The translations under genes and the position numbers were made by a program. The notes under the pieces were generated by a model that had not been told where the DNA came from, searched no databases, and was given only the letters and a program-made list of their open reading frames with translations. 64,000 bases of DNA from the IMG/VR virus record IMGVR_UViG_3300028676_000005, positions 124,001-188,000 of that record. One strand, given 5' to 3'. Below, one piece after another: positions 8,927 through 52,358 of this stretch. How positions within the stretch are numbered: the stretch's first letter is position 1; the number at the start of each line of letters is the position of its first letter.

Positions 8927-9304
8927 TTAACCTTGAAAAAACTCGGTACGGAGAAGCTCGTTAAATTGGTCCACAAGGTCATGGATAAGCTGACTGTCCA
9001 AAATAGCTGGGGGATTGTCAGGGTTATGCAGACCCATGTACTTAGCACCAACAAAGATTTCTGGATTCGTATTTGGATCCATTTCTTTGTAGATGTTTAC
9101 GTTGTAGCCAACTACCATCTGGTTCTCAAAAGCAAGACCAAGATAGTAGTCACCAATTGCAATACGGTTAGGAAACTTGATGCGTTCAAACTGAGGGTGA
9201 TCTTCATGGTCTTTTACAAAAGCATTTACTGCTTCTGCTTTAGCCATAGTCTTCTCATAAATAGGAACAACCCGCACGCAATGTTCACATTGATTACAGG
9301 TCAT
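8927..9304 (-). CDS. hypothetical protein with N-terminal CxxCxxC
   Basis: ATGA overlap with upstream gene. Confidence 0.7.
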   Translation of the reverse strand: MTCNQCEHCVRVVPIYEKTMAKAEAVNAFVKDHEDHPQFERIKFPNRIAIGDYYLGLAFENQMVVGYNVNIYKEMDPNTNPEIFVGAKYMGLHNPDNPPAILDSQLIHDLVDQFNELLRTEFFQG

Positions 9305-9774
9305 TTTTTTCTTACCGCCTCAACTTCAAAGTTTACAAACTTCCTGGCTTGGGCCTGTTCCCAGTTACGACGGTCATCAGCAATGCTACCAAAGCTGCGA
9401 CCACGAGGTGGTTGTTCAGTGTTAGGTACAGCCCAACCAGGCGGTGCGTCTCCACCCAGACCTTCTGATAACTTGAGTTTGTACTCATCGGAGATCTGGA
9501 TCATGCGATTTACCCAATCTTTAAAAATTGGCCTGAAGCATGCCAATTCAACAGCCGAGTCAAAATGAGTCGCTGTCTGACTAATCCTGATCCGACGGTT
9601 ACCCAGGTTTTTTACATAAACTGCAATTTCTTGATGGTCAGTTTTCCAATCACAAAGAACAAACAATACATCGCCGTTTTCAGGATCTGTTGAAAATGTT
9701 GGGAGACCAACAAGAGATCTGATAACATTAAACCCATCACGCAATACCGCCAGATCCGGATTTGCATTTTTCAT
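9301..9774 (-). CDS. hypothetical protein (157 aa)
   Basis: ORF in operon. Confidence 0.7.
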   Translation of the reverse strand: MKNANPDLAVLRDGFNVIRSLVGLPTFSTDPENGDVLFVLCDWKTDHQEIAVYVKNLGNRRIRISQTATHFDSAVELACFRPIFKDWVNRMIQISDEYKLKLSEGLGGDAPPGWAVPNTEQPPRGRSFGSIADDRRNWEQAQARKFVNFEVEAVRKK

Positions 9775-20831: not shown

Positions 20832-23723
20832 TTAAATGCGGTCTCGTTGCGTAAAGAACTTGTTAGGTCCCAATGCGCCGTCATCTTCAAAGTAAGGCAC
20901 TGCGGTACCACGTCTTGAACTGCTCACCAAATGGTTAGCAACAACCAAGTAATTACGGTTCATTTCCAAGACACCGTTAGTAGCCACACCAAACATTACC
21001 TCAGAGTTGCTAACTTCACGAATCTTGTCAGACCCAAATGCAGACAACCCATACCCAGTTTTGGCCAGGTAGCAGTAAGTAACACCGCTAGGATTTACTT
21101 TGATGCTTTGTCCTTGGTAAATGGTGTAACCAGTACCTGCAATAACCACTTTAATCCCAGATGGCAAATAGACCCAACCACTGTCATTTTTGGAATAGGG
21201 ATCAAGAGTTACAGAAGGAGCCGACAACTGCACCATTAACGTAGAGAAGCGACTATCACGACTAGGGTCATAGATAAACAACCCAATTTCGTGCAGCACA
21301 AATGGTGGGTACAACTCTTCAACGATGTCCACAGACTTCATGTTGCTGTACAACCGAGCGGGGTTATTAACTCGTCCCACAACGGCTGGATTTGCTGTTG
21401 ACAATCCGGTAATGCGGAAACCCACATCTCCGTACACGTTACCATAGACACGGTTGATAGCGACATCAAAGGTATCCGAGCCAGAGCGATACGCAATAAG
21501 GTCACTGAAAACCATAGCAACACTGTCACCTGATGCCGAAGTACGCGAGTTACCGTACGGAGCGGTTACAGGAGCGGTTACAGGAGTTTGTGCCAGAGCA
21601 CCGTTAACAAAGTCCAATGTAAACAACCCATTAGCAATGCTGTACGGGGCAATACCAATTTCCACATAACCCAAACCGTCTGAGACAGCGTACACGGCTT
21701 TGTTGTAAGCCAGTGCATACACTTGAATCTGTAGCTCACGCAATGCCACCAGACGAGGGTCTGGGTTGACCACAGCAGCCCTGCCAATGAAATCTGCCGC
21801 TCGACTTTGAATAGACAAGAGACTAGATGGATTCAGTGCTACAGGGTTTTGCAATGTCAGTGTGCCGTCCACGTACGAAAACGTTTGATAACCCTTGTAA
21901 GAGTTATAACGGTTGAACACCAATGCGTTAGAGTTTATTGCCGTGTTGCCTTGGGCAATGTACGAGGAGGTCCCGCTAGGAAACGCCCACATGTCTTTTC
22001 GACCAATAATAGTCAAAGGTTCCTTAACACTGTAACGGTTATTAATCAGCGGGTCGTTAACATTGCCAACGTCCCAGATGAGTTCTAACCAGTTATATTT
22101 GCTAGTGTTAGGGTCCAGGCCATAAGCCAAATAGTTTGTCCCAATGTTGTTCTTACGCAAAGGGATAATTCGATCTGGCAAAGCAGTAAAGCTCAGATGT
22201 CTGGCCGGAGTTACGTGTTCCGTAAAAGCCCTTGACGCATGCACAAACGGTCTTGGTCCAGTAGCCCAGTCTTTAAAAGACTTAAAGGTGGTATCAAACC
22301 GCTTAACCCGCAGCGCGTTCTTTGTTGCAACACCACGCACCAGCTCACCAGTACCAAGCACAACACCAGGGTTATGAATAGGCGAGTTGATGTTGTAAGC
22401 ATCGAACAGCTCAAACCATTGGGCACCAGTCGAAAGAACGCCATTAGCGTCAATGGAATCCTGGACATAGGTACCCACCGTCTTAACAGAAGCCACCCCA
22501 CCTGCCCGCAGTGTCCCTGGAATGATGGAATCCATGAAACGGAGTGTAAGAGCAATCTGTTTACCATTAGCAAGAGTAACCATTACCTTTGCCGCGATAA
22601 ACACACGTGCCTCATAATCCAAAGCGTTCCAGAACATCCCAATGACAGGAGGTGTGGATGGATCAAAGACAGCCGTAGCGCCGGCAGGCAGGCTAAGGAA
22701 GTTGCCTACGTAATAAGAATGCGGTAATTGGAATGATGCGGTGGTGGTTACCCCAATGGTCGCATAATTAGCCTGGTAATCATTACCAATGATCGGGACC
22801 AGTGTTGGGTCCGCATCAAAGGCATTTACCTGAAACCCCTTATGCTCCACTAGCAGTGTATTAGCATCCGGCAATGATGCCGCGGCAGCCAGACCTTTAT
22901 AAACCGCATCGCCAAACGAGCTAAAGAGCAAATACGACCGAGCCAGACTGGCAGACATACCAAGCTGATCTTTAAATTCGTAAATGTGCTTATCCGAGAT
23001 AGACTTAAAGAAGTTTACTTTGCCAGTTGAGGATTTAGCAGCGATCCCATTCCAGCAAAGTCCTTCCAGGCTACCAACTACGTTTGGGATTTCTTCCAGT
23101 TGAGTCTTGCGGGTAACTAACGCAGGACCACTCAAGAACAAACTATCCCTGGCATATACGGTGTCGTCTTGAGGAACTGAGAACACCATGCGGTCAGCGT
23201 TAAGCAAGATGGTAGCCCGGTTGTCCATTCCTGCAACACCAAGATAACGTATTGCTTCTACCGTTGGAGGTGGGGAAGTCGGATAGCCGTCTGGATAAAA
23301 ATACGACGCCATTTGAAGGACGTTGTTTTGTTGGTAACCGTCACTATTAAAAACAGGCTGGTTTAGTGCAATAGACTGAAACGCACCTTGTACAGTAACA
23401 AAGGCGTTTACATCAGTCAGTGCGCGCTGTTCCGCGAGTGTAGCTGTGCGGTAGTTATCTTTCTTACCAAGGCCTACGGTTGTCTTTGTTTCTCCGTGGA
23501 CCGCCCCCTGCTTAGCAATGTGGTTAGCAATGGGGATTACCACATCATTGACGAATTTGTTAATGTTGCTTTGGAAATCTAACAGCTTTGTTTTAGTTGA
23601 ATCGTTGTAGCTAGCCGTTTGCTCTTGAACAACGTAAGCCAGGTCGTTGAGTTTTCTGATGACTCCGCCAAACCTTGGATTAGGTTCTTCTACAAAAGGT
23701 GGTTCTCCACCGTGAATAATCAT
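20832..23723 (-). CDS. tail fibre/baseplate-associated virion protein (paralog 1)
   Basis: H..HG.TK..VGLG..DN..TA motif; C-terminal domain related to neighbours. Confidence 0.7.
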   Translation of the reverse strand: MIIHGGEPPFVEEPNPRFGGVIRKLNDLAYVVQEQTASYNDSTKTKLLDFQSNINKFVNDVVIPIANHIAKQGAVHGETKTTVGLGKKDNYRTATLAEQRALTDVNAFVTVQGAFQSIALNQPVFNSDGYQQNNVLQMASYFYPDGYPTSPPPTVEAIRYLGVAGMDNRATILLNADRMVFSVPQDDTVYARDSLFLSGPALVTRKTQLEEIPNVVGSLEGLCWNGIAAKSSTGKVNFFKSISDKHIYEFKDQLGMSASLARSYLLFSSFGDAVYKGLAAAASLPDANTLLVEHKGFQVNAFDADPTLVPIIGNDYQANYATIGVTTTASFQLPHSYYVGNFLSLPAGATAVFDPSTPPVIGMFWNALDYEARVFIAAKVMVTLANGKQIALTLRFMDSIIPGTLRAGGVASVKTVGTYVQDSIDANGVLSTGAQWFELFDAYNINSPIHNPGVVLGTGELVRGVATKNALRVKRFDTTFKSFKDWATGPRPFVHASRAFTEHVTPARHLSFTALPDRIIPLRKNNIGTNYLAYGLDPNTSKYNWLELIWDVGNVNDPLINNRYSVKEPLTIIGRKDMWAFPSGTSSYIAQGNTAINSNALVFNRYNSYKGYQTFSYVDGTLTLQNPVALNPSSLLSIQSRAADFIGRAAVVNPDPRLVALRELQIQVYALAYNKAVYAVSDGLGYVEIGIAPYSIANGLFTLDFVNGALAQTPVTAPVTAPYGNSRTSASGDSVAMVFSDLIAYRSGSDTFDVAINRVYGNVYGDVGFRITGLSTANPAVVGRVNNPARLYSNMKSVDIVEELYPPFVLHEIGLFIYDPSRDSRFSTLMVQLSAPSVTLDPYSKNDSGWVYLPSGIKVVIAGTGYTIYQGQSIKVNPSGVTYCYLAKTGYGLSAFGSDKIREVSNSEVMFGVATNGVLEMNRNYLVVANHLVSSSRRGTAVPYFEDDGALGPNKFFTQRDRI

Positions 23724-23780
23724 AACCCACTCCTGTTAAAGCCCGGGGCAAGGGAAATCCCCCACCCCAGGTACATAAAG

Positions 23781-26700
23781 TTACGGAAGCAACTCGGACT
23801 CTTTCAAGAAGATAAAACTACCGTCTTCTTGTGGGAACCCAGAACTAATTGGAATGCTGCCACCTTGACGACTGTAACTCAACTCAAGATCACCGATCAT
23901 AAACGACTGGCGGCGTTCAATAGTCAAGATTTGGTTTGCACCAGTTTTAATAATCGCACCAAGGATCATTGTGTTGGAGTGACGAAGTTTGACGCTACTG
24001 ACTACATAACGTGTTGTCTGATCTTCTACCGTAGCGTATAACCAAAAGGTTTTATTCTGCGGTGCTGGATCAATATCACGTAAGTCAATAGTTCCAAGCG
24101 GCATCCGATAAAGAGTACCGTTAAACATCACCTCAACGTTTTCCAAAATGAAGATAGCCCAACCAACTTCCGGATAACTGGTGATCACTGAATAGTAGTC
24201 GGTTCCTCCGTCAGGGCGAACCAATGGCATCGTTCGAGATGAGCCACCCGATGGGTCAGTAGACACACCCGTGTTAGTCCAGTCTCTTACAGACGCGTTA
24301 TACGTATCAGGAGTATCGATACGGTATTTGGTCAACCCGGCTCTAGGGATTGCACAAACGATATCACCGACGCTAGCACCAGCATGATCGGCACCCAGTT
24401 GGCTAAAGGCGCCTGTTGCAATGTTCAGATCAAAAACAGTGCAATCAAAAGTACCCCCAAACGCAGTCATCCCAGAAGTTAGGAAGCATTTCAAAACATT
24501 TCCGTTCCGATAAAACGTAAAGAAAGGTCTGTTCGAGAAATGTACCTGCCCACCCATCAGCCCCACAGATAAACTGTAATGTTGCAGATAAACCTGGGTA
24601 TTCCCAACAATCTGGAAGTCAGTGATCAAATGACAACCTGGGTGAGCTGAAGTAGGAGCTTCTACTACTAAGTTAACCAAGAATATTTGAGCGTCATAAG
24701 TACCGGTATTCGCGGCTGCGGTGGTCGGGTACTTAACATACAGCAACGCTTTATTCATTCCCTGGAAAACACCGCCGGCCTCATCGTTTAAAACAAACAA
24801 CGAAAATGACCAGTAGGCACTTTGCTTAGCCGCTGGAATAAGCGCTCTCGCTTTATCCTTTATGCTTGGAGCCAGCCCGTAGTAATCGTTTGGCGTATAC
24901 ATCATGCGCTGATTAATGACATCCAGCTTTTTGGTGAAGGTCTTAGGAAAAGACAGGAACGCACCTTGCTCATTAAGCGCCCGAAATGCAGCACTCGGGA
25001 ACGTAGTTAGTGGTGCGTAGCTTGGGTAAGCAGCGGATGAGAACCCGCACGCACTCAAGCTCATGGTCCCACAGTCCACACCACGACTAGCCAACTCAGC
25101 AGCAGTACCAGTCCCGGAGATAACTCCTTCAAGGTTAGACATGTTTGTCTTGTAAACCTTGTTAGTAAGCGGTCTCGAGTACAACGGCGCCAGCTCCTTG
25201 TTAAAGACAGCCGGACGAATTGCATACCCGCCGCTTACTTCCCGGCAAACAATTTCCGGATAAGGCAACCCTGCCGCTTTATCAGCAACAATAGTCGTCT
25301 GGGTCATGAAGTTCTCTCCATCCCCCTCATAAGCAACCCAACGGTTAGCAACACCAATTGGGATAGGAGTCTGAATACTTCTTGACCTTACGTTCCAGGC
25401 ATTTACTTTAAGCCGGTCGTAACTGAGATCGCCAGACAACAGCTGTTCTGCTGTGGTAAGGTGTGTTCCATTAATGAGATCGAATGTGTGGTACTCAATC
25501 ATTGAGTTAAGTGGAGACACCTCTTGGTTGGGTGCCGTCGAACTCATTAACTTTTCCCCATTCGGTGTAACGATTGTGGCTACCGAATGATATCTAACCA
25601 TAGACCCGTACCAAGGGGCAAATTTGTTGAGGTCAACAGTTGCAACGTTACCGCCCAAATCGTTTACAAAGTCAACGTTTAGTGGAGGCTGCTTGTAAAC
25701 AAGTGTCATTACCCCCGTGTCAACGTTAAACTCATAAACCATGTGGGTTGCGGTTCGAGAACTGTTAAACCCTGTGCCAGGCACAACCCATGACAAAAGG
25801 GTATAACCCAACCAACTGTAGTAGTAAACACTAGGCGCGTTAGATTTCTTGGCGTAAAGGTTTACTCCTCGATAGTTAAACGAGCCGACATTGGCTGGTG
25901 GTTGAAGTTGGTTGAAGGTGTATCGCCCCCATTTGCTAACCAGGCTATTGTTCACAACCTTAGACGCGTAGTTCCAGCTGTTAACGTTTGTATATTGAAC
26001 TCCGTCGTAATCCTGATAGGTGACCTTAAGAAGCTGCCAGGTAGCTGGAGTTCCGTCAATCAAAGATTTCTTTGGAATACGGAAACGAACAATACGACCT
26101 TGCTGGCCGTACAGATTTGGGTTGGTAGGCGCTGCATCAACCGTTAGCACCGCCCAGTCGCCCATCAAGTCAATCTTGAACTGCCAGTGATAGGGTTTCC
26201 CACTACCCCACATGCCTGCCGCATTAGGAGTCCCGCATTCCGCAAAGACGTTAGCCATATTCGTTTCAATATAGCGGTGCGAGCTTGGGTCAAAAGTGTT
26301 GCTAGTTAACGCAACAAACCAATGGTCATTTGTGGCTGGGTTGGCGTTCTTTGCATTACCAGTCATGATAATGTCATTTCCGCTACCCATGACGATGGCA
26401 TTCGGGGTTATCCCAATGTTGGTCAATACCGGCGGTTCATACTTGTAAGCAGTAAATTCAAAACTAAACGGGTTCTTTACATCCAGTGGTTTCTTTGCAT
26501 CAGAAAGCACAGAGAAGTACAGGCCTTCCGTACGACCGTCGTAGTGGTTCTGGATCAAAACAACACGACCATCGGCTTCCAGGCAAATACCCATGCATTC
26601 GCTGCGGCTACCCAGTCCTTCAAAAGAACCAGTAATGCTTGGCGGGATGTACCCGGTGGTGCCAAAACGACTGAGAGGCAGTAAGCCTGCTTTCATAATC

Positions 26701-27515
26701 TCCGACGTATCAGGAGACGACTCTTCCAAGACTGTTTGAACACCTTGAACGGTAGCAAACAAATCCGCACGAGTACCCTGGCGATGTTGATCAATCGTAC
26801 CAGTGGCAAGGTTCTCATGGTTGCCCAAGAGTACATCACCTTTGCTGGTACCATGCGGGCGGTTATAGTTACTGCCGTGTGCACGCAATGCTTGGAACTG
26901 GGAATCACGGGTTTGATACAACTTATCAAAAGCTGCACGAATGGCCGCATCAACCCCAGCTTCAATTGTAGGGTCCTTGGTAGAAATGGTTGCTTCCAGA
27001 TATTTAAAGAACCAGGTAAATTCAAACCAGTCCCCAATTTCTGTTTTAACGTTGTGGCTGTGCCATTCGCTTGGAAGGGTGGGCGGTACGTTAAATACCT
27101 TACTCCAAGGGATAGGAGTAACACCATCACGAATCTTTGTTACCCATTCTTCCAGGCTGTTGCGAGGAACAAAGTAAGCACCAACACTGCGGTAACTGAT
27201 TTTGATTTTGGTGTTAGCTTCCAAAATCTCGTCACTAAGACGAACAAAACAAACAATGGGGCGTCCGGTGACTTCTGTGAGAGGGATGAACTCCTCTTCT
27301 AGCCAGTAGTCGCGGTCTCGTACCATTTCGGCACCAGACTCATCATAGACGGTTGTAAGAGGTAACTGACCAGGGGCTGGATAGTCACCAAAGAAAGGGG
27401 AGCCGTTTGGGATAACCCACGGGCATTTATCTTTGAGTGGAATTTCTTCCAAGTCAATCTTGTTAATTGGTTTGACGCCACGGACGTCAAATTCAACAAC
27501 GCGTAGAGTATCCAT
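23781..27515 (-). CDS. tail fibre-like virion protein (phiKZ gp145/146-like, paralog 2)
   Basis: PHGTSKGDVLLGNHENLAT; GSFEG; C-terminal YPEVGW...GTIDLRDI.P.PQNKTF. Confidence 0.75.
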   Translation of the reverse strand: MDTLRVVEFDVRGVKPINKIDLEEIPLKDKCPWVIPNGSPFFGDYPAPGQLPLTTVYDESGAEMVRDRDYWLEEEFIPLTEVTGRPIVCFVRLSDEILEANTKIKISYRSVGAYFVPRNSLEEWVTKIRDGVTPIPWSKVFNVPPTLPSEWHSHNVKTEIGDWFEFTWFFKYLEATISTKDPTIEAGVDAAIRAAFDKLYQTRDSQFQALRAHGSNYNRPHGTSKGDVLLGNHENLATGTIDQHRQGTRADLFATVQGVQTVLEESSPDTSEIMKAGLLPLSRFGTTGYIPPSITGSFEGLGSRSECMGICLEADGRVVLIQNHYDGRTEGLYFSVLSDAKKPLDVKNPFSFEFTAYKYEPPVLTNIGITPNAIVMGSGNDIIMTGNAKNANPATNDHWFVALTSNTFDPSSHRYIETNMANVFAECGTPNAAGMWGSGKPYHWQFKIDLMGDWAVLTVDAAPTNPNLYGQQGRIVRFRIPKKSLIDGTPATWQLLKVTYQDYDGVQYTNVNSWNYASKVVNNSLVSKWGRYTFNQLQPPANVGSFNYRGVNLYAKKSNAPSVYYYSWLGYTLLSWVVPGTGFNSSRTATHMVYEFNVDTGVMTLVYKQPPLNVDFVNDLGGNVATVDLNKFAPWYGSMVRYHSVATIVTPNGEKLMSSTAPNQEVSPLNSMIEYHTFDLINGTHLTTAEQLLSGDLSYDRLKVNAWNVRSRSIQTPIPIGVANRWVAYEGDGENFMTQTTIVADKAAGLPYPEIVCREVSGGYAIRPAVFNKELAPLYSRPLTNKVYKTNMSNLEGVISGTGTAAELASRGVDCGTMSLSACGFSSAAYPSYAPLTTFPSAAFRALNEQGAFLSFPKTFTKKLDVINQRMMYTPNDYYGLAPSIKDKARALIPAAKQSAYWSFSLFVLNDEAGGVFQGMNKALLYVKYPTTAAANTGTYDAQIFLVNLVVEAPTSAHPGCHLITDFQIVGNTQVYLQHYSLSVGLMGGQVHFSNRPFFTFYRNGNVLKCFLTSGMTAFGGTFDCTVFDLNIATGAFSQLGADHAGASVGDIVCAIPRAGLTKYRIDTPDTYNASVRDWTNTGVSTDPSGGSSRTMPLVRPDGGTDYYSVITSYPEVGWAIFILENVEVMFNGTLYRMPLGTIDLRDIDPAPQNKTFWLYATVEDQTTRYVVSSVKLRHSNTMILGAIIKTGANQILTIERRQSFMIGDLELSYSRQGGSIPISSGFPQEDGSFIFLKESELLP

Positions 27516-27536
27516 TACTTAGCCTTTTTAAGTTAA

Positions 27537-27565
27537 AATGGGTGCGGGTTATCCCGGCACCCATT
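27537..27565. terminator. intergenic hairpin
   Basis: AATGGGTGC...GCACCCATT stem. Confidence 0.5.
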
Positions 27566-27573
27566 CTTAACAG

Positions 27574-30500
27574 TTAAGTTAGCAGCTCGTCATTACGCAA
27601 CCATGGCAGTTGGCCTTCTTCGTTAGCAAGACCTGAACTAGCGGGGATACAGTTACCACGCTTGGTCTCAGACACACGGTTACCGTTCATGGCAAACACG
27701 TTGAAGCGCTCAATGGTGAGGATTTGAGAATCCCCAGTCACTACTTTACTGGCCCACAGTTGGAAAGGAGTTTCCAGTCGCTTCTCCTCAACAACTTCGT
27801 AAATAGGAACACCATTCCTGAGCGCTGCGTAAACATAAAACGTTTTGTTTTGTGGGGAAGGGGATATATCACGCAGGTCAATAGTACCAGAAGGAAGAAC
27901 AAAAGGTTTTCCATTGAAGACTACTTTGATGTCAGTCTTAAAGAAGATCACCCAGCCTACTTCTGGATACACGGACCCAACTACAGGTCTGTTTACAACC
28001 CCATTGACAATAGTGGCCGCACCACCGGTTGTGTTAGCCCAGTCGTACATCGTTGCAATACCGTTATCAGGAGTTATAAACACCCCACCGCCTGCACTAC
28101 TGTTACCTTGCTGAGAAGCACTAGTCCAACGACGAGTGTTTCGGTTGTTATAAGCAAAGTTAAAGTTTGAGGTGTACGCGTCCCCTGTGGTGTTGCCCAT
28201 TACCCCACTGTTAAGGTGGCAAGACAGACTATTGCCGTTTAGATAATAGAACGCCCTCATTGGACCAAGGGTTGACTGCGGAGATTCAGGGCCGTTGGCG
28301 TAACCACCAAAGACGCGAATCTGGTCAATAGCCGCGGAGTCTGCCCACCAGTTAAATTTATCCGTAACCGTAAACCCAGTAACCTCTTTTCGGCCTTGGG
28401 CATTAGTGATGTATGTAGGTTGGATAACCATATACGTCGCGTGCATTCTTGCACGAATCGCACTGTTTTCCGCGTCGACATAGGTAACCGCCGCAATAAT
28501 TGGCAGCCACCCAAAACGTTCGAGTGAAGAAAACGTTGGGTCGGTCACGGTAACAATGCAATCACGGCTACGGTTCTTAATATCTAAGAACTCAACCTGG
28601 TTTTTCAGCTGTTCCACAATTGCCGACGGATAAAGAATCTCAGCCGTTGGAACAATTGTTATGGTTCCGTCTGGTTCGATACGTCGGTTGTAATCAGAGA
28701 TCAACAGAATGTCATTGTCTCCGACAGGCGCCCCCCATCCAGTACCGACTTTGTCAAGCTGGTTGTACTTTTTCTGACTGTTTGTGCAGAACATTGATTC
28801 ACCAACATCAATACCATAAGTATCAAGCTGGCTTGAAGGCACACTGACTGTAGCCCCACCAATACCAGGCAAAGCGTTAACTTTGCGGATACTAGTTGTC
28901 AATGGACGCGAAACAACGTTATTCAGAAAAAGATTTGTCACTTCTGGACGTGCCGCAAACTTCCCGTTGATATCTTTCCAGAAAAGTTCCAGCTTACCAA
29001 GGTCTGTACGGTCAGCCGCAATGTAATGCTCACCACCTGGACGATACAGTAACCCACGGACGTTAATAGACGACATTAACGGGCTGGCAATAGTTTCTTG
29101 CCAAGACCCGAAGTTAGACATCTCATCCCAACCACGTCCCCAGAATTTAGAAATGGTTGCGTATTTTGTTTTGGCGTTAACAATCTCAAAGAGAGTGCCG
29201 ACTCTAGGGAACCCGCTGAACCCCATTGCTGCGGAACTAGCGATCCGTCCGTCTGGCAATACGTTAATACCTTGCCCGGCGTAGCTAAACACCAGCGAAT
29301 AAAAAACGTTGTTTTGAACGTATTCACTAGGGAGTATAGGCGACCCCAAAATGTTCAGTGTGGGTGGTATTGCTGTTTTAGACGTGAGTGTCATTACTCC
29401 AGTTACTGGATCAAAATCATAGTTAATCTCTGGGACAAAGTTGAACTGCCCTTGGCCCGTTGGTGTGGAGTGAGAACCGTAATACGCAGATAGGAACTTC
29501 ATCGCGTAGATGCCCTTACGGGAAGGGTCCTCAGCAACCATGACCGGGAGTGAACGATAGTTACCGATAACTCCGTTAGCCGGGGTTGGCGAATAAGTAA
29601 ACAATGCTTTAGAAGTTAACCCGTTAGCGTTCACAAAAGAATACCAACGGAAGTAAGTGGAGTTATTCCACTGTACCCCATCCGCGTCAACAAAGGAAAC
29701 CAATTGTAGAGTTGGAGTAACGTTAATGGTCGCTTGAACGTCAGCCAGCTTAACCCTGAAGAACTGTTTACCAACTAGCGGGTAACCAACACCTGGAGCT
29801 AGACCGCTACCTTTACTTGAGGACTGAATCAAGTAAATCCATTCACCCATTAAAGCAACGCTCAGCATTGGGAACAAACTTGATGGCATTATGTTTGTCC
29901 CACCGCCAAATGTTGCGTCGACGATTGGCTGCAAGTTAACTTTGGAGTAAACGTGTTTTGCTGGATCAAGAGACCCGTTCGTCACACCAACGTAAAACAA
30001 GTTCTTACGACTATCCCCCACCAGGATTACTTCGTCCCCACTACCCTGTGCAATACGGTCGACACTCGCGTTATCCGCATCAAACTTAGGGTGCTCGTAT
30101 TTAAAGCCGGAGTACACAAGCTTAGTTTTGGCGTAATCTTCCGTGTCTTGCATTACACTGTAATACAAACCAGCAGTACGACCATCCATACGGTTCCACA
30201 GGAAAGTAATAGTCCCGTCACTCTCTAAGCACATGCCGCCCGCTTCAGTAACACCACCGAAACCTTCAAAAGAACCGTCAATGTTAGCCGGGATGAAGTT
30301 AGTGTTACCAAAGCTGCTCAACGGCACCTTGTTACTGGCCAGCAACTCTGGGGCGTTAAAGCTCAGGGTGTTGATGATGGTTTTAAGACCACCCGGTGTC
30401 AGGTGCATGTCGTTGTTAGGTTTGAGCAGATCATCACCACGAGCTGTGGCAAAGTTGTCCACTAAAGGCAGCCCAATCTGGCCTTTGGTCAAACCATGCG

Positions 30501-31152
30501 CGTCATAGCTACCTTCATGTCGTGCCAAACTCTTAAGCAACTCAGTCCGGTATACCGTAATGTAGTTGTTAAGCAAATCAAGGTAATGCTCAATCTTGAT
30601 CTGGGTTGGGGTACGCGAGTTAGCGTTGAGGTAATCAAGAAGCAGGGTAATAAGTTCTACCATATCGCCAAAAGCGATCATGTCGTAGATCAAACTCATG
30701 CCGTGCAGTTCTGGTGGGAATACAACAGGTTTGTCCCGCAGGTTTTCCCAGTAGACCGGACGGTTGTCTTCGGCGGTCTCAAGAATCAAGCGCAACAGTG
30801 TGTTATCAAACAAACTGAAGTGCCCAACAATGTCGTAATCAAAGAACCCATCAGTTACGTCTGGGTTCAAGATCTCGATCATGCAGCCGACTGGTTTAGC
30901 AGTAAGCTCGGTCAAACCACCCATGATCTTGTACATGCGCCAATCACCAACACCTTCATCGTCTGCTTTGGTAAGCGGTTCCATGTTGGCGTTGTACAGG
31001 CGCAAAGACTTAACAAAGAAAGGAGCGTGAACTGGAATAACAATACGACTACCAGGACCTTTGATTACCTTAAAGGGCTCACCCAATACACGGTTCTCGG
31101 GGTTCTGGTTAAGAATGTCGTTACGGTATTCGTGAACAATAGGAAAATTCAT
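27574..31152 (-). CDS. tail fibre-like virion protein (phiKZ gp145/146-like, paralog 3)
   Basis: AHGLTKGQIGLPLVDNFATA; GSFEG; same C-terminal domain as 23781-27515. Confidence 0.75.
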   Translation of the reverse strand: MNFPIVHEYRNDILNQNPENRVLGEPFKVIKGPGSRIVIPVHAPFFVKSLRLYNANMEPLTKADDEGVGDWRMYKIMGGLTELTAKPVGCMIEILNPDVTDGFFDYDIVGHFSLFDNTLLRLILETAEDNRPVYWENLRDKPVVFPPELHGMSLIYDMIAFGDMVELITLLLDYLNANSRTPTQIKIEHYLDLLNNYITVYRTELLKSLARHEGSYDAHGLTKGQIGLPLVDNFATARGDDLLKPNNDMHLTPGGLKTIINTLSFNAPELLASNKVPLSSFGNTNFIPANIDGSFEGFGGVTEAGGMCLESDGTITFLWNRMDGRTAGLYYSVMQDTEDYAKTKLVYSGFKYEHPKFDADNASVDRIAQGSGDEVILVGDSRKNLFYVGVTNGSLDPAKHVYSKVNLQPIVDATFGGGTNIMPSSLFPMLSVALMGEWIYLIQSSSKGSGLAPGVGYPLVGKQFFRVKLADVQATINVTPTLQLVSFVDADGVQWNNSTYFRWYSFVNANGLTSKALFTYSPTPANGVIGNYRSLPVMVAEDPSRKGIYAMKFLSAYYGSHSTPTGQGQFNFVPEINYDFDPVTGVMTLTSKTAIPPTLNILGSPILPSEYVQNNVFYSLVFSYAGQGINVLPDGRIASSAAMGFSGFPRVGTLFEIVNAKTKYATISKFWGRGWDEMSNFGSWQETIASPLMSSINVRGLLYRPGGEHYIAADRTDLGKLELFWKDINGKFAARPEVTNLFLNNVVSRPLTTSIRKVNALPGIGGATVSVPSSQLDTYGIDVGESMFCTNSQKKYNQLDKVGTGWGAPVGDNDILLISDYNRRIEPDGTITIVPTAEILYPSAIVEQLKNQVEFLDIKNRSRDCIVTVTDPTFSSLERFGWLPIIAAVTYVDAENSAIRARMHATYMVIQPTYITNAQGRKEVTGFTVTDKFNWWADSAAIDQIRVFGGYANGPESPQSTLGPMRAFYYLNGNSLSCHLNSGVMGNTTGDAYTSNFNFAYNNRNTRRWTSASQQGNSSAGGGVFITPDNGIATMYDWANTTGGAATIVNGVVNRPVVGSVYPEVGWVIFFKTDIKVVFNGKPFVLPSGTIDLRDISPSPQNKTFYVYAALRNGVPIYEVVEEKRLETPFQLWASKVVTGDSQILTIERFNVFAMNGNRVSETKRGNCIPASSGLANEEGQLPWLRNDELLT

Positions 31153-31162
31153 CGGTTATCCC

Positions 31163-31927
31163 TTAATCGAGTTTTGCAGTACCGTCACGCAGTTGCCGAC
31201 CAAATGCTTTCATTACATTCATGGTCACGGCTACGTTGCCATCGGCACCGGCCAGGTCTGCTTCAGTAGACGGGCGAAGGTTAGCTACGTCTGGGATACC
31301 AATATCACCAGTGGATGCGGCATGTGCTTCTGGAAGACGTTTTTTCAGGTGGTCTTCCAAAAGGGCCAGTGCGTCACCTTGGGCCGCTTTATCAGTCATG
31401 ACAATGATAAGTGACTTAAGAGCAGCGTAAGCTTCCAGCCAGTCGTAAGTCTGTTCCAAAGGCTGTTCGTGTGGATCTGCTGGGAATGCGGTGGGAACGC
31501 CAATGAGGGAATCCCAGCTTGCCTGACGAGGGCTGTTAGCAACGTTAGCGACCAAGGTAGCAAATGCTACGTCATCAAGGATGAATGGTCCGCCAATGGT
31601 GTCATAGCTCGCTACAAGCACTTCACCAGGAAATGGCTTCAGCAAGACAAAAGCACCGTAAACATTTCGTTTGTACTTGTCCATGAAACGGTCAAAGGTA
31701 TTGCAGAAAGCGTAGTCAACACCCAGTTCCAATTCAACATTGCTAGACTGGCGTTTCAGAACAAACTTCTTGGCTGCCCCGTTATTACGAGCCGCACTAA
31801 AGAACGGACCAGCCCGAACTACAAACACGCGACGGGTAGTATCGTTGGCTACCTTGACTACTTCGTTTTCAACGCGGCAATCGATGCGTTCTTGAAAGGG
31901 GTTCCAGTTGTAAATTGGTGCAGGCAT
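31163..31927 (-). CDS. virion/baseplate protein related to the fibre N-terminal domain
   Basis: GPFF, W..L.G.P..FP...H motif shared with fibre N-termini. Confidence 0.65.
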   Translation of the reverse strand: MPAPIYNWNPFQERIDCRVENEVVKVANDTTRRVFVVRAGPFFSAARNNGAAKKFVLKRQSSNVELELGVDYAFCNTFDRFMDKYKRNVYGAFVLLKPFPGEVLVASYDTIGGPFILDDVAFATLVANVANSPRQASWDSLIGVPTAFPADPHEQPLEQTYDWLEAYAALKSLIIVMTDKAAQGDALALLEDHLKKRLPEAHAASTGDIGIPDVANLRPSTEADLAGADGNVAVTMNVMKAFGRQLRDGTAKLD

Positions 31928-37155: not shown

Positions 37156-39444
37156 CTAGTTACCATCCTTCTTAGGAGGAGTCTGTTTAGCCAACACTCC
37201 GTAATAAGTTTTAGGGAGGTTAAACGTGTCATCAGGCGGCGTCAACAACCCGTAGTAAGTCCTTGGGATGTAGAACGTATCGTCAGGTGTGCCCAAAATG
37301 CCGTAATACGTGTCAGGTATTATGAAGTAGTTAATTGGGTCGTCATTACCAATAGAACGGATGTACGAGTTATCTTGAACCTTAACAGTGTATTCAAAAG
37401 AGTGCTTGAACTTGTCAACACTCTTAATGAAGTTGTTATCTTTCAGCTTGATGGTCGAAGCCATGTCCGCTTCAATAGTAGGCCTATCTGGAAACAAAAA
37501 GGCCAATACAGATTCAAGTTCTCGGATACCGTCCATGTTGGATTGGACGTTAAGCATCACGTTTCCAAAGTCAGCATCAAGACTATTGCCAGGGCCTGTC
37601 AGTTTACTGTCACCAACTGACACTTCGTTTGGAAGTTCGGTAACACCGATCTCATCAGCCATCTCTTTAATGAAATGGATGGTGTACGAAGAGAGCCGAG
37701 ACATGATATCGATAAGGTCGCTTTGCTTGACCCGCATGTTTGGTTGGATATTGGTATCCCAGCCAGTCACACGTTTAAAGATATCCCAGGCAAACGTTTT
37801 GCACTCAGCCGCTGAGTAGTCAGAGAAGTCCAGGTTGTAATCACGCAACAACAGATCGTACTTGGTATATTCGCCAAGCTTAACGAAACCTGAATCGTAA
37901 ACTGTCTTAGTGGCGTTTTTAACTCGAGCACGTTTATTCAGATCGTAAAACTGACTGTACATCTTCTTGTGTTTCCACATCGCCTCATAAACCTCAAAGG
38001 CGTACTGGACAAGATAGTCAGGGGCTACAAAGTTAGCAACTGGAAACCAAATGTTGCGGATATCGTAGGCAAGGTATTCGGGGTAAATAAAGTTCTTACC
38101 GCCAGCCTCATAGACGTCTGCAAGACTAGGTGGCTTAATTCGCATCACGTTCTGGTAATAAACTGGACCAATGTCAACAGGGTGGAACCCATTGCTATAA
38201 TCGACCAGATACCGCCAAATGTGATACGCATCGGCAACTGTCATCTTGATTTGTTTGCCAGTCTTTGGATCAGACACGACAACACGACCAGTGAACTTGT
38301 TATTGCCAACCAGATAGATCCATTCGTTATACACAACAGACATCAAAGTATCAGCATGGCGGTTGGTGTAGTCACGCATGCTAGATTCTAAGACTTTAGT
38401 AGGTAGTTCCGAGTGAAGACTGTACTTACCACGTTCTAAGGCGTCCTGTTGATAGATGGCCGTTTGATCGTAGTTGTCCCTGGCTAACAACTGCTGTTTA
38501 AGAATAATCTGTTCAGTGGTGTTGTAGGTGGGTTCCCGGCCGTAGTCCTCAATGAGATTAAGGTTAAGACGGCGATACAACGGAGTTGGACTAAGATCTT
38601 CCAGCTGCGTTGCGGTACCTTCCACCATGTCAAACTTAGCCAGCGGAATATTTGCAATAGTCAGCAAATTCTCCATCAGCTTATTAAACGTCAACGTCTG
38701 CCCGGGGTTATTCTTAATCCAGGCAATGTTACGAAACAACCACATGGTTTGTTCGCGGTTAAGACTATTTTTATATTTGGAGAAATCCCCGTAGGAATCA
38801 ATGTGGCTCCAGATATAAAAGTCATGACTGTGCCGAGTGTACATGTCTTCAATGCGAATTGTGTGAATTGCTTTGATGACGTCAGCCATAAGCAAACGGC
38901 TCATGGTAGGGAGAAACAAGTTATCCGTACCGATATATTCGTTGTTAAAAAGCTGACTGACTTCAGACTTAATAAAGTTTTGAAGCTTTGGAATTAACTG
39001 GTCCTCGTTCCACAATACTAACTTTTCATTGTACCGAAGAATCTTATAGTCATCGGCGGGAATCGTTTCCGCATAAGGGATCGGGGAGAGTATGCCGCGT
39101 ATCAGTGTTGGTTGAGCTGGATAACGTTCGGTAAGCCGTTTAAACCAATAACCGCCCTTAGCGTATTCACGGAAAGTAATCAGGTGAACACGCAGGTTCT
39201 CTTTGTTAAAGACGATTTCTTCGTCGTTATCCAGAGAGTTAACGGTCATTGGTACGTCGGTCTCATGATAGTCCCCGTTAAGGTTCATGTAGTACCGCCA
39301 AGTAGCTTTATCTTCTTTTACAATATAACCCACACGCTCTAGGGCCTGGTTATATCGTTTTGCTAACGCCTCATTTTTGATAACCATGGTTCTTGCAAGG
39401 GAAAAGATGTCCCTGAAGTACCTGTCTTTATCAGCATTATTCAT
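37156..39444 (-). CDS. baseplate wedge-type virion protein (phiKZ gp128-like) with three C-terminal TYYG repeats
   Basis: WRYY.NLNGDYH..D, HSHDF, TKVLES, LSSYT; divergent from portal. Confidence 0.7.
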   Translation of the reverse strand: MNNADKDRYFRDIFSLARTMVIKNEALAKRYNQALERVGYIVKEDKATWRYYMNLNGDYHETDVPMTVNSLDNDEEIVFNKENLRVHLITFREYAKGGYWFKRLTERYPAQPTLIRGILSPIPYAETIPADDYKILRYNEKLVLWNEDQLIPKLQNFIKSEVSQLFNNEYIGTDNLFLPTMSRLLMADVIKAIHTIRIEDMYTRHSHDFYIWSHIDSYGDFSKYKNSLNREQTMWLFRNIAWIKNNPGQTLTFNKLMENLLTIANIPLAKFDMVEGTATQLEDLSPTPLYRRLNLNLIEDYGREPTYNTTEQIILKQQLLARDNYDQTAIYQQDALERGKYSLHSELPTKVLESSMRDYTNRHADTLMSVVYNEWIYLVGNNKFTGRVVVSDPKTGKQIKMTVADAYHIWRYLVDYSNGFHPVDIGPVYYQNVMRIKPPSLADVYEAGGKNFIYPEYLAYDIRNIWFPVANFVAPDYLVQYAFEVYEAMWKHKKMYSQFYDLNKRARVKNATKTVYDSGFVKLGEYTKYDLLLRDYNLDFSDYSAAECKTFAWDIFKRVTGWDTNIQPNMRVKQSDLIDIMSRLSSYTIHFIKEMADEIGVTELPNEVSVGDSKLTGPGNSLDADFGNVMLNVQSNMDGIRELESVLAFLFPDRPTIEADMASTIKLKDNNFIKSVDKFKHSFEYTVKVQDNSYIRSIGNDDPINYFIIPDTYYGILGTPDDTFYIPRTYYGLLTPPDDTFNLPKTYYGVLAKQTPPKKDGN
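37192..37326 (-). repeat. three copies of a 17-aa-period motif
   Basis: FIIPDTYYGIL / FYIPRTYYGLL / FNLPKTYYGVL. Confidence 0.95.
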
Positions 39445-49361: not shown

Positions 49362-49416
49362 AAAATGCAAAAAAAAGGAATCAACTACCCCACTCCCTTT
49401 TAAAGGAGTGAGGTAG
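49362..49416 (-). terminator. MCP transcript terminator
   Basis: CTACC.CACTCC / GGAGTG.GGTAG stem followed by T8 tract. Confidence 0.75.
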
Positions 49417-49445: not shown

Positions 49446-49535
49446 GCCTCATCGACAGTGTCAAGAGGGGTACTAGGCAGGCCCCTCTAACAGACCGTAG
49501 TAGGTCGATGGAAGGATGAGGCCTACGGGTTTCCC
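49446..49535 (-). other. putative -1 programmed ribosomal frameshift cassette
   Basis: G_GGA_AAC at 49535-49529 in frame; 6-nt spacer; paired segments GCCUCAUC/GAUGAGGC and AGAGGGG/CCCCUCU; -1 frame stops at 49473-49475. Confidence 0.8.
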
Positions 49536-51721
49536 GCTTCGATGGCGCCTTGGATGCCAGCCAGAGCTGGAGCCAGACCTTCGATGGCGATGCGCTGTTT
49601 TGCCAGCTTGGTCAGCAGACCGTTATCACCCAGGAACTCTGCGGCGTCAGTGATCTTCAGCGAACCGATGATCGGGTTGAGCGCCCAGTGTTTGTAGGTA
49701 GGGATGGTCATGACCACACCGAAGTCCTGCTGATCACGAGTCACGTTACCTTGTACAACGATGTTCTCTTTCGAGACAACGACGCCGACACCGCCCAGTG
49801 GGTTGATGTAATCGGAAGTCGAATCGTTTTGGGTAACGATCAGGATCTCACCGATCTGGCTGTCGAAGTTGGTTTCGACGGCTTTCATGGTGGTCAGAGG
49901 ACCCAGGGTACGAGCGTCGCCCAGACGGAGCAGGAAGCGGCACAGGTTCTGGTGAGCGATGATGTTCCACTTCGGAGAAGTAGCACCGCCGTATTCGGCG
50001 ATCGCGGCGATACCGGACTTGGTAGTCAGGGCCGAAACGATGTCGCTGATTTCGTTGGTGAACACGGCGCAGACTGCTTCCAGCACACCGGTGCTGTCTT
50101 GGGTCGATACGACGTCGGCCAGGGTGATCTTGCGGTTTACTGCGGCAGCTTGCACGTAGTGCATGCCTGGCAGGACGTTGGAACCCTGGTTGTTCGAGAC
50201 CACAGCATGGCCGTCGATGGAGGTGATGTACGCCAGGTGCTCAGCAGCCATGTCGAACGCTTTACGCGAGCACTGGTTGTTGATCGCCACCGACATTTGC
50301 TCGATCGCGTAGTCCAGGGAGCCCTGGTTCACGTCTTGCTTGTCGATTGGGTATTTCACAGACACCGGGTCGCCACGTTTGACGGACAGGTGCTTGTCGG
50401 CATCGAACACTTCGATACGGTAGCCGAAGTTACCGCGCGAGTTGTTGGTCACGTTACCGGTGATTTCGATACCGGATACGGAACCGTTGGTCAGGGTGCG
50501 GAACAGTGATTTCTGAGCGTCATCAGCGCGATCACGAGTGATCACGTTACCGGTTGGGATGTGCTGGAGAGCAGTGATCGAAACCTGGCCGCCGTTCAGG
50601 CGCATGACGTTCTTTTGACGCTGGTAGTTGCCGTCCATCGACACGTCCAGCAGAGGGCGGTAGCCAGCTGCTTTCAGATCGGCGAACAGGGTCTCACCAA
50701 CTTCCAGGCCGTCTTTGTCCTGTACAGCAAAACCGTTGTGACGGTTCAGCAGGATGGCCATTTTGCGGTCATCGGACGATTGGCCGTTCGAAGTCGGGAT
50801 GAAGGTGTTGTTCGACATCGCCTTGGTGTTGATGAAGAACGTCTTGACAGTGCCCTTGATAGTAGCGGTCAATTGCAGAGTCTGACCGGTGAGCGAGTTG
50901 GACTCGATCTCGTCGGTAGCGGTGTACGGACGCTGGCCAGGGGTTTCGCACAGGCCCAGGAAGTTCGGAATGACGCTCGGAACTTTCAGGAAGCTGGTCA
51001 GGTGGTTTTCGCGGCCCAGGGCATCAGCTTCCATGTAGGTAGCGGTCCATGGGGTACGGTCGGCGGCTGGAACGAACAGCTCGCGGGTGTCGTCGGTGTC
51101 CGACTCAGGGTACACAGGGTGTACAGCCAGGGCGGATTCGGCGAACATTTTGCCGGAACGCAGCAGACCGAAGATCGGTTGCAGTTCGGAGGCGGACTGC
51201 CAGGCGCTGTTGCCGTAAGCGTAAGTACCCAGACCAGCGGCACGAACCTTCATCAGGACGCCTTCGTCTTCGTAACGAACGGTCAGGGTGGCGAACAGTG
51301 CTTCGGCGCCAGGAGTCTGCAAGTGGCTCTGGGCGTTGAGGGCCATGTTCAGAGCTTTGACGGTGGTTTCCGAGCCTTCCCAGTTCTGCATCGAGAAGCC
51401 TTCCAGGCCATCGACGGTACCGTAGAAGCTTTCGGTACGTTCAACGATGTCTTTCAGCTCGCTCGGAGCAATGTTGGTGGTACGGCCGAACGAGGATTGG
51501 AACGCGGCGAAGTTCTTGTCGTTCAGACGAGTGGCCAGCATGCCATTCAGCGATTGGCTCTCAGCGCCTTGAACACGAGCCAGGTCGAACTTGCTCGAGA
51601 AGCCAGAAAAGTTTTCCTGGCCTTGCACCGCGGTCAACGATTCGTTCTTCAGTGCATCAGCGATCAGCTGAACAAGGTTACCCTCGTTCTTGAGACCCAT
51701 CTTAATCTGTTTGTAAGCCAT
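49523..51721 (-). CDS. major capsid protein (phiKZ gp120-like)
   Basis: 732 aa; strongest codon bias; N-terminal G-x-E processing sites; Q...AEALF.T, TNNSRG motifs; synteny with helicase. Confidence 0.85.
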   Translation of the reverse strand: MAYKQIKMGLKNEGNLVQLIADALKNESLTAVQGQENFSGFSSKFDLARVQGAESQSLNGMLATRLNDKNFAAFQSSFGRTTNIAPSELKDIVERTESFYGTVDGLEGFSMQNWEGSETTVKALNMALNAQSHLQTPGAEALFATLTVRYEDEGVLMKVRAAGLGTYAYGNSAWQSASELQPIFGLLRSGKMFAESALAVHPVYPESDTDDTRELFVPAADRTPWTATYMEADALGRENHLTSFLKVPSVIPNFLGLCETPGQRPYTATDEIESNSLTGQTLQLTATIKGTVKTFFINTKAMSNNTFIPTSNGQSSDDRKMAILLNRHNGFAVQDKDGLEVGETLFADLKAAGYRPLLDVSMDGNYQRQKNVMRLNGGQVSITALQHIPTGNVITRDRADDAQKSLFRTLTNGSVSGIEITGNVTNNSRGNFGYRIEVFDADKHLSVKRGDPVSVKYPIDKQDVNQGSLDYAIEQMSVAINNQCSRKAFDMAAEHLAYITSIDGHAVVSNNQGSNVLPGMHYVQAAAVNRKITLADVVSTQDSTGVLEAVCAVFTNEISDIVSALTTKSGIAAIAEYGGATSPKWNIIAHQNLCRFLLRLGDARTLGPLTTMKAVETNFDSQIGEILIVTQNDSTSDYINPLGGVGVVVSKENIVVQGNVTRDQQDFGVVMTIPTYKHWALNPIIGSLKITDAAEFLGDNGLLTKLAKQRIAIEGLAPALAGIQGAIEAGNP

Positions 51722-51809: not shown

Positions 51810-52358
51810 TTAAGGGTTTTGATTGCCCAGCAGTTTGTAAACTTCAGCCATGGTGAACTCACCTACTTTACTGTCCACAATCGCACCGAAATGAGATTCC
51901 ATGAAACCGTGAACATGCAAGATGGCCTCCAACAATGCACCAGAGAATGTTAGCGCAGAAGCCTTACTCCAGCTGGGCGGTGTTGTTTGGTTCTCGTCGT
52001 TAATAACAACCACGAGTTGATTACTTTTGAAAGAGCTGTATCCAAAAGATGTTGCGTCGGTAAACGCGGCGGATAAGCTTTTACTGTCGACACTATTAAA
52101 TGCCGCTTTTAACATCTCACCTTCATAATCTTTACTGAAGATTAAATCTGGGTCGAGCAAAGCAACACCGAGTTCTTTTGCAGCGCGGTATTGCATAGAA
52201 ATGATTTGAGCAATTTCACCGTAAGTTGCCTTTTGATGATATGTCTCAATCGTCGATAAGTTGCTCAACGGAATGCCGACCTTAGCCAACAACTTAACCA
52301 TAGAGTTGGTCAAGAAGAATACTTCGATCGGGGAACCGTTAGGTGTCCTGAGAATCAT
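51810..52358 (-). CDS. putative head-associated protein (phiKZ gp119 position)
   Basis: Between helicase and MCP; AGGAG RBS. Confidence 0.55.
   Translation of the reverse strand: MILRTPNGSPIEVFFLTNSMVKLLAKVGIPLSNLSTIETYHQKATYGEIAQIISMQYRAAKELGVALLDPDLIFSKDYEGEMLKAAFNSVDSKSLSAAFTDATSFGYSSFKSNQLVVVINDENQTTPPSWSKASALTFSGALLEAILHVHGFMESHFGAIVDSKVGEFTMAEVYKLLGNQNP

Follow-up and report, generated by a model that had tools for sequence, protein, structure and literature searches.

The region of interest lies on the minus strand of a 64,000-nucleotide stretch (hereafter, the window) of the IMG/VR virus record IMGVR_UViG_3300028676_000005, positions 124,001 to 188,000. It carries the major capsid protein (MCP) gene of an EL/RisingSun-like jumbo phage and the gene of a baseplate wedge protein. 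The elements discussed below are the following.

49523..51721, minus strand: major capsid protein gene, 0 frame, 732 aa (PhiKZ_MCP family).
49529..49535, minus strand: heptamer G_GGA_AAC, in phase, 3 codons before the stop.
49526..49532, minus strand: overlapping second in-phase heptamer A_AAC_CCG, followed by C_CCG next to the TAG stop (49523-49525); these are alternative slip positions that give the same product.
49473..49529, minus strand: -1 frame tail of 18 codons (P then VGLILPSTYYGLLEGPA) plus a TAG stop at 49473-49475; it adds 17 residues, giving 749 aa.
49446..49522, minus strand: long imperfect stem-loop (outer arms GCCUCAUC at 49515-49522 and GAUGAGGC at 49446-49453, with inner hairpins) that starts 6 nt after the heptamer and encloses the tail-coding region; candidate frameshift stimulator.
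49369..49416, minus strand: separate GC-rich hairpin (49385-49416) followed by a T-run; likely transcription terminator of the MCP transcript.
37156..39444, minus strand: baseplate wedge protein gene, 762 aa, homologue of phiKZ gp128, EL gp104 and RisingSun gp89.
37192..37320, minus strand: three C-terminal repeats of the wedge protein carrying [IL]P-x-TYYG-[ILV]L, the same motif as the MCP tail.

The identity of the capsid gene is clear. The 732-aa protein matches phrog_3231 (major head protein, E 4e-161) and Pfam PF25620 PhiKZ_MCP (E 2e-129), and the best PDB matches of its AlphaFold model are phiKZ gp120 (8y6v, E 8e-34 with Foldseek) and phiKp24. A megablast of the MCP region against GenBank phages found nothing, and relatives had to be reached by protein searches. 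The nearest GenBank phages are Erwinia phage RisingSun (56% aa identity), Pseudomonas phage EL (51%) and Shewanella phage FishSpeaker (48%), and an IMG/VR contig of 229 kb carries the identical gene. Another homologue, in Pseudomonas phage vB_PQ1 (PQ516283.1), matches in five separate pieces annotated as five major head protein CDSs. The wedge homologue of this phage is also split, and these genes are interrupted, perhaps by introns, inteins or homing endonucleases, or by assembly problems. Elsewhere in the window, four adjacent ORFs of 963, 1244, 1192 and 254 aa (20832-31927, minus strand) share an N-terminal module (phrog_2163, with tail-fibre PHROGs). They resemble the phiKZ gp131-gp135 paralogues whose N-termini build the hetero-hexameric fibre base, and are likely the tail-fibre set of this phage.

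The MCP gene ends GCG GGA AAC CCG TAG, and the -1 frame after the heptamer encodes 17 additional residues containing LPSTYYGLL. The initial annotation had claimed that the gene hides a -1 frameshift that puts a baseplate motif on the capsid protein, and the sequence anatomy it described is correct. In the six-frame translation of the window, TYYG occurs only four times, in the three repeats of the 762-aa protein and in this tail, and the longer pattern [ILVMF]P.TYYG[ILVM]L matches the same four places. However, the window alone is weak evidence for recoding. An in-phase heptamer within 5 codons of a stop occurs in 4 of 77 long ORFs, and the -1 frame stays open for at least 16 codons after 31% of stops, such that the combination of a heptamer with an open frame is near chance. 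The motif match is unusual, but it was noticed after the fact. The 157-aa ORF at 9301..9774 (minus strand) ends AGA AAA AAA TGA, with an in-phase A_AAA_AAA heptamer two codons before the stop (9301-9325), and its -1 frame runs straight into the next gene (8927..9304, 125 aa, ATGA overlap), so that a slip would fuse the two. Both proteins lack any PHROG match, and this could be a second recoding site or just an A-rich ribosome-binding region. The 182-aa gene upstream of the MCP ends with an in-phase A_AAC_CCT heptamer two codons before the stop (51810-51830, minus strand) and a 49-codon open -1 frame, which may be due to chance.

The comparison with relatives is decisive. We collected MCP loci from IMG/VR, GenBank and other metagenome assemblies (loci are labeled L followed by a number). 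In 35 IMG/VR loci, 3 GenBank phages (EL, RisingSun and FishSpeaker) and 5 further metagenome contigs, with MCP identities between about 45% and 100%, the sequence after the MCP stop encodes, in the -1 frame and never in another, 12-20 residues containing the motif [IL]-P-x-T-x-[Y/L]-G-x-L, of which the [Y/L]-G-x-L core is invariant. Examples of these tails are LPGTYYGVL in L004 and L027, IPSTNYGRL in RisingSun, SPANYGRL in EL, NPYYYGNL in FishSpeaker and PPADLGEL in L124. An in-phase heptamer lies 2-5 codons before the stop in all but four of these relatives, and it changes identity while staying slippery: C_CCA_AAC is the most common, and we also found G_GGA_AAC, A_AAA_AAC, C_CCA_AAT, G_GGA_AAA, C_CCA_AAG, G_GGA_AAG and A_AAC_CCG, the latter being the only heptamer in L019, L020, L022 and L035. 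The four relatives that lack a canonical heptamer (L023, L024, L040 and L126) keep ACC CCN followed by the stop, a P-site slip context, and they keep the tail.

The tails bear the signature of selection on the peptide, not on the nucleotides. In 30 unique cores Y-G-x-L is invariant, while Gly is written with GGT, GGG, GGA and GGC and Leu with six codons, and entropy is concentrated at the third positions of the -1 frame. The 95%-identical relative L122 has changed the heptamer to G_GGA_AAA and two variable tail positions (Y to F, L to Q), but its core is untouched. In contrast, five outgroup phages with an MCP 41% identical or less (PDCC-1, USC-1, Miami, AhC3_1 and AH04) have no heptamer, early -1 stops, no motif, and only a terminator after the gene. 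Two clade members with shorter MCPs (Logan contigs L125 and L127, 709 and 711 aa), which end before the usual P-N-P region, also lack the heptamer, the tail and the hairpin, and are apparent losses of the cassette. We also searched for relatives with the tail fused in frame to the MCP, which would have been independent proof that it is a protein part, but none of the 98 database homologues has it.

We then analyzed the RNA downstream of the shift site. In the window, the 77-nt stem-loop folds with a z of -4.0. Across 32 unique relatives, the 85 nt after the site fold much better than dinucleotide shuffles (mean z -3.1, with 81% of sequences below -2), and a long-range helix starts 2-9 nt (mode 5-7) after the site in 30 of 38 unique sequences, against 239 of 1140 shuffles (21%). 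The stems have unrelated sequences in different lineages. RNAalifold on a MAFFT alignment of 14 diverged cassettes predicted no structure, because the 3' arms misalign, but one subgroup alignment shows six pairs with compensatory changes, and a closer subgroup keeps a 26-pair structure with only G-C/G-U-type changes. There is no Rfam family at this place. The likely terminator hairpin and T-run that follow were not called by a strict terminator scan, although the same arrangement is seen in relatives. Heptamer, 5-7-nt spacer and stable structure together form the canonical -1 frameshift arrangement, even if the hairpin could serve mRNA stability as well as, or instead of, stimulating the shift.

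The initial annotation was also right in calling the repeat-bearing protein a baseplate protein. The 762-aa protein (phrog_3222) matches the phiKZ gp128 wedge protein (PDB 9xqs_C, E 6e-79) over residues 8-596, and the C-terminal roughly 160 residues that carry the tags lie outside the match. In the phiKZ structural atlas, gp128 forms the wedge heterotrimer with two copies of gp87 and contacts the gp139 band of the outer baseplate (PMC13250141). In 27 related genomes the wedge protein has 0-4 copies of the tag, and the variable positions of these copies follow the MCP tail of the same genome: TYYG-x-L-x-P-E types go together, and so do [ND]YGRL-x-[YFW]-P types, as in EL, where the wedge has three copies of [ND]-Y-G-R-L and the tail has ANYGRLEYPE. 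When the invariant residues are excluded, same-genome identity is 0.40 against 0.31 +/- 0.02 for permuted pairings, and 0 of 5000 permutations reach the observed value. Relatedness among genomes inflates this test, but lineage-linked co-variation is the point. Distant wedge homologues have no tags, and some genomes have the MCP tail but no tag on the wedge protein.

The motif is not restricted to these two proteins. A six-frame scan of the whole EL genome finds [NDYFS]-Y-G-[RQ]-L only five times: in the MCP tail, three times in gp104, and at the extreme C-terminus of gp147, a 209-aa protein encoded next to the phage chaperonin. In RisingSun, gp89, gp197, gp205 and gp206 carry the motif at their C-termini. 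The last three belong to a paralogous family with the same N-terminal domain as gp147 (F-L-D-[KR]-F..N..R-Y) and end in IP-[DE]-TDYGDL. However, gp147-like proteins (L109-L121 and RisingSun gp201) end either in the [Y/L]G-x-L tag or, in most lineages, in a tandem [YH]-[DN]-G-T..[YH]-[DN]-G-T..Y motif. No gp147 homologue lies in the window, and the one found elsewhere in the same genome (L110:2495-3067) has this different ending (YDGT..YDGT..Y). The C-terminal tags look interchangeable on one scaffold, and the set of tagged proteins is not fixed. We tried to place the EL gp147-like family in a solved virion, but neither a PDB sequence search nor an AF2 model (pLDDT 69) compared with Foldseek gave a meaningful match. 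Finally, seven paralogous virion structural proteins of RisingSun of about 290 aa (gp196, gp198-gp200 and gp202-gp204, in L063, RisingSun 171923-196492) all end in another conserved motif, [FWY]-x-P-[VI]-[FLY]-E-L-[VILM] followed by 1-3 residues. This may be another docking tag, of which no copy was found in the window.

The position of the tail on the capsid is inferred by homology. The model of the window MCP has a low-confidence C-terminal arm, with pLDDT of about 50-65 over the last 30 residues and a short helix at 716-728. In phiKZ the equivalent arm (gp120 residues 728-747) is a helix in hexons and a long loop in pentons, where it reaches between subunits of gp244, a protein on the outer capsid surface (PMC11297242). 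Relative to gp120, the window MCP runs about 26 residues past the last aligned position (query 706, residue 742 of the 747-residue gp120). The tail is therefore most likely an exposed, flexible appendage near capsomer centres.

Considering these results, we propose that the MCP gene carries a programmed -1 ribosomal frameshift cassette at its very end. Most ribosomes would terminate and make the 732-aa MCP, whereas a minority would pause on the hairpin and slip back one base, on G_GGA_AAC, on A_AAC_CCG, or on CCG at the stop, adding 17 residues that end the protein with ...LPSTYYGLLEGPA. The tail would most likely act as a docking peptide for one common partner, and frameshift efficiency would then set how many capsid subunits carry it. 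The co-variation among tagged proteins argues that all copies bind one partner whose binding site drifts between lineages, which could be a fibre or adhesin, a decoration protein, or an assembly or trafficking factor, although none was found. The idea of the initial annotation, a docking tag whose dosage is set by recoding, fits this co-variation and the outward-facing arm of gp120. Yet, it remains an inference: there is no direct evidence that the shifted protein exists, and the published RisingSun lysate mass spectrometry was searched against annotated proteins only. The initial annotation also described GGGAAAC as an established slippery sequence, which holds mainly for eukaryotic systems. 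Most heptamers of these phages have AAC or AAT in the A site, which E. coli ribosomes tolerate poorly (PMC4066793), and the efficiency is expected to be low and may be very low. On a shell of the phiKZ class (1620 MCP copies), 1-5% would still give tens of tags per capsid. We put the probability of recoding plus a tag-type function of the tail at about 0.78, that of the recoding being about 0.9 and that of the docking role with a common partner about 0.55.

Among the alternatives, the one that survives best, although we regard it as unlikely, is that the frameshift product is real but the tail acts within the shell, as a cementing strand that binds neighboring MCP or decoration subunits at particular lattice positions such as pentons, the wedge repeats doing the analogous job inside the baseplate. 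In line with this, the phiKZ MCP arm changes conformation between hexons and pentons and binds the vertex protein gp244, phiKZ baseplate proteins such as gp26 insert C-terminal peptides into neighbors, and the tail is short and beta-prone. However, this does not explain why the tail and wedge tags co-vary within a genome, nor why small non-capsid proteins (EL gp147, RisingSun gp205 and gp206) carry the same tag, and a stochastic minority isoform fits poorly with fixed lattice positions. It is very unlikely that the same product arises by RNA polymerase slippage. Some relatives have A6 at the site (AAAAAAC in L011-L013) and chimalliviruses use unusual multisubunit RNA polymerases, but most sites have runs of only three identical bases, too short for efficient transcriptional slippage, and the in-phase X_XXY_YYZ arrangement with a hairpin 5-7 nt downstream is the hallmark of ribosomal -1 shifting. 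Least likely of all is the absence of recoding, with the -1 peptide a by-product of an RNA element (3' stabiliser or terminator) or of chance, since, even if the region is strongly structured and the window alone is near chance expectation, the stems are not conserved in sequence while the peptide core is, the frame is always -1, the heptamer is maintained through changes of identity, and the same peptide occurs in ordinary ORFs of the same genomes and co-varies with the tail. Translation of the tail as a small ORF was rejected because there is no conserved start codon and the frame is open upstream into the MCP, and sequencing error because the 0-frame stop and the shift are present in independently sequenced isolates and in many metagenomes.

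Frameshift-derived C-terminal extensions of major capsid proteins are established for T7/T3 gene 10, Lactobacillus phage A2, and Listeria phages A118, A500 and PSA (reviewed in PMC5009743), where they add domains of about 50 or more residues, often Ig-like. In T7/T3 a -1 shift at the end of gene 10 makes a minor, extended subunit incorporated beside the main form. T7 appears to use G_GUU_UUC-type sites with a distant stimulator in the terminator and to add about 50 residues (an Ig-like domain in T3), whereas here the hairpin is adjacent, the addition is a linear motif of 12-20 residues shared with baseplate proteins, and the shell is a jumbo T=27-class shell. In the A2 major head protein (gp5A/gp5B), a -1 shift near the end of the gene with a downstream stem-loop gives two forms that are both in the capsid (PMC5009743), but A2 is a siphovirus of a Gram-positive host, its extension is a large Ig-like domain reported to be essential, and no motif is shared with tail proteins. 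In the Listeria phages, recoding at the 3' end of capsid (cps) and tail (tsh) genes gives two C-terminal variants, with shifts on proline codons next to a stop or a pseudoknot (PMC5009743), which resembles the ACC CCN variants found here. Yet, the direction is +1 in PSA, the extensions are longer, and there is no conserved short motif common to capsid and baseplate. The lambda-type tail chaperone G/GT frameshift uses a heptamer of the G_GGA_AAG class, as in L124, and gives a fixed low ratio of two products, but in a different gene, where the product is probably an assembly chaperone absent from the virion. Finally, phiKZ has the same MCP fold and the same wedge protein family, and C-terminal peptides of its structural proteins dock into partners (the gp120 arm with gp244, the gp26 C-terminus with gp157 and gp130-gp139), but phiKZ-type and other distant chimalliviruses show no frameshift tail and no [Y/L]G-x-L tags. 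We found no published description of the present case in full-text literature searches, and the GenBank records of EL, RisingSun and FishSpeaker annotate a single MCP CDS, without a join feature.

More tentatively, EL/RisingSun-like jumbo phages may use a small code of C-terminal peptide tags to address structural proteins to common docking partners, the [Y/L]G-x-L tag being one and the YDGT..YDGT..Y and P-[VI]-x-E-L endings of paralogous virion proteins possibly being others. Ribosomal frameshifting would then be the dosing device that places a few tens of [Y/L]G-x-L tags on the capsid, and the same fibre, adhesin or assembly/trafficking factor that binds the baseplate wedge would also bind the head.

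These results predict an unannotated second form of the most abundant virion protein in a whole clade of nucleus-forming jumbo phages, which includes the cultured phages EL (Pseudomonas), RisingSun/Joad (Erwinia) and FishSpeaker (Shewanella). They extend capsid-gene recoding to jumbo phages, and to a case where the added piece is a short linear motif rather than a domain, and they provide a natural low-copy display site on a jumbo capsid. The motif links the capsid to the baseplate wedge protein and to small gp147-like proteins through co-evolving copies, which points to an unknown common partner. The results also offer a handle on how chimallivirus capsids are decorated, trafficked, docked or bundled.
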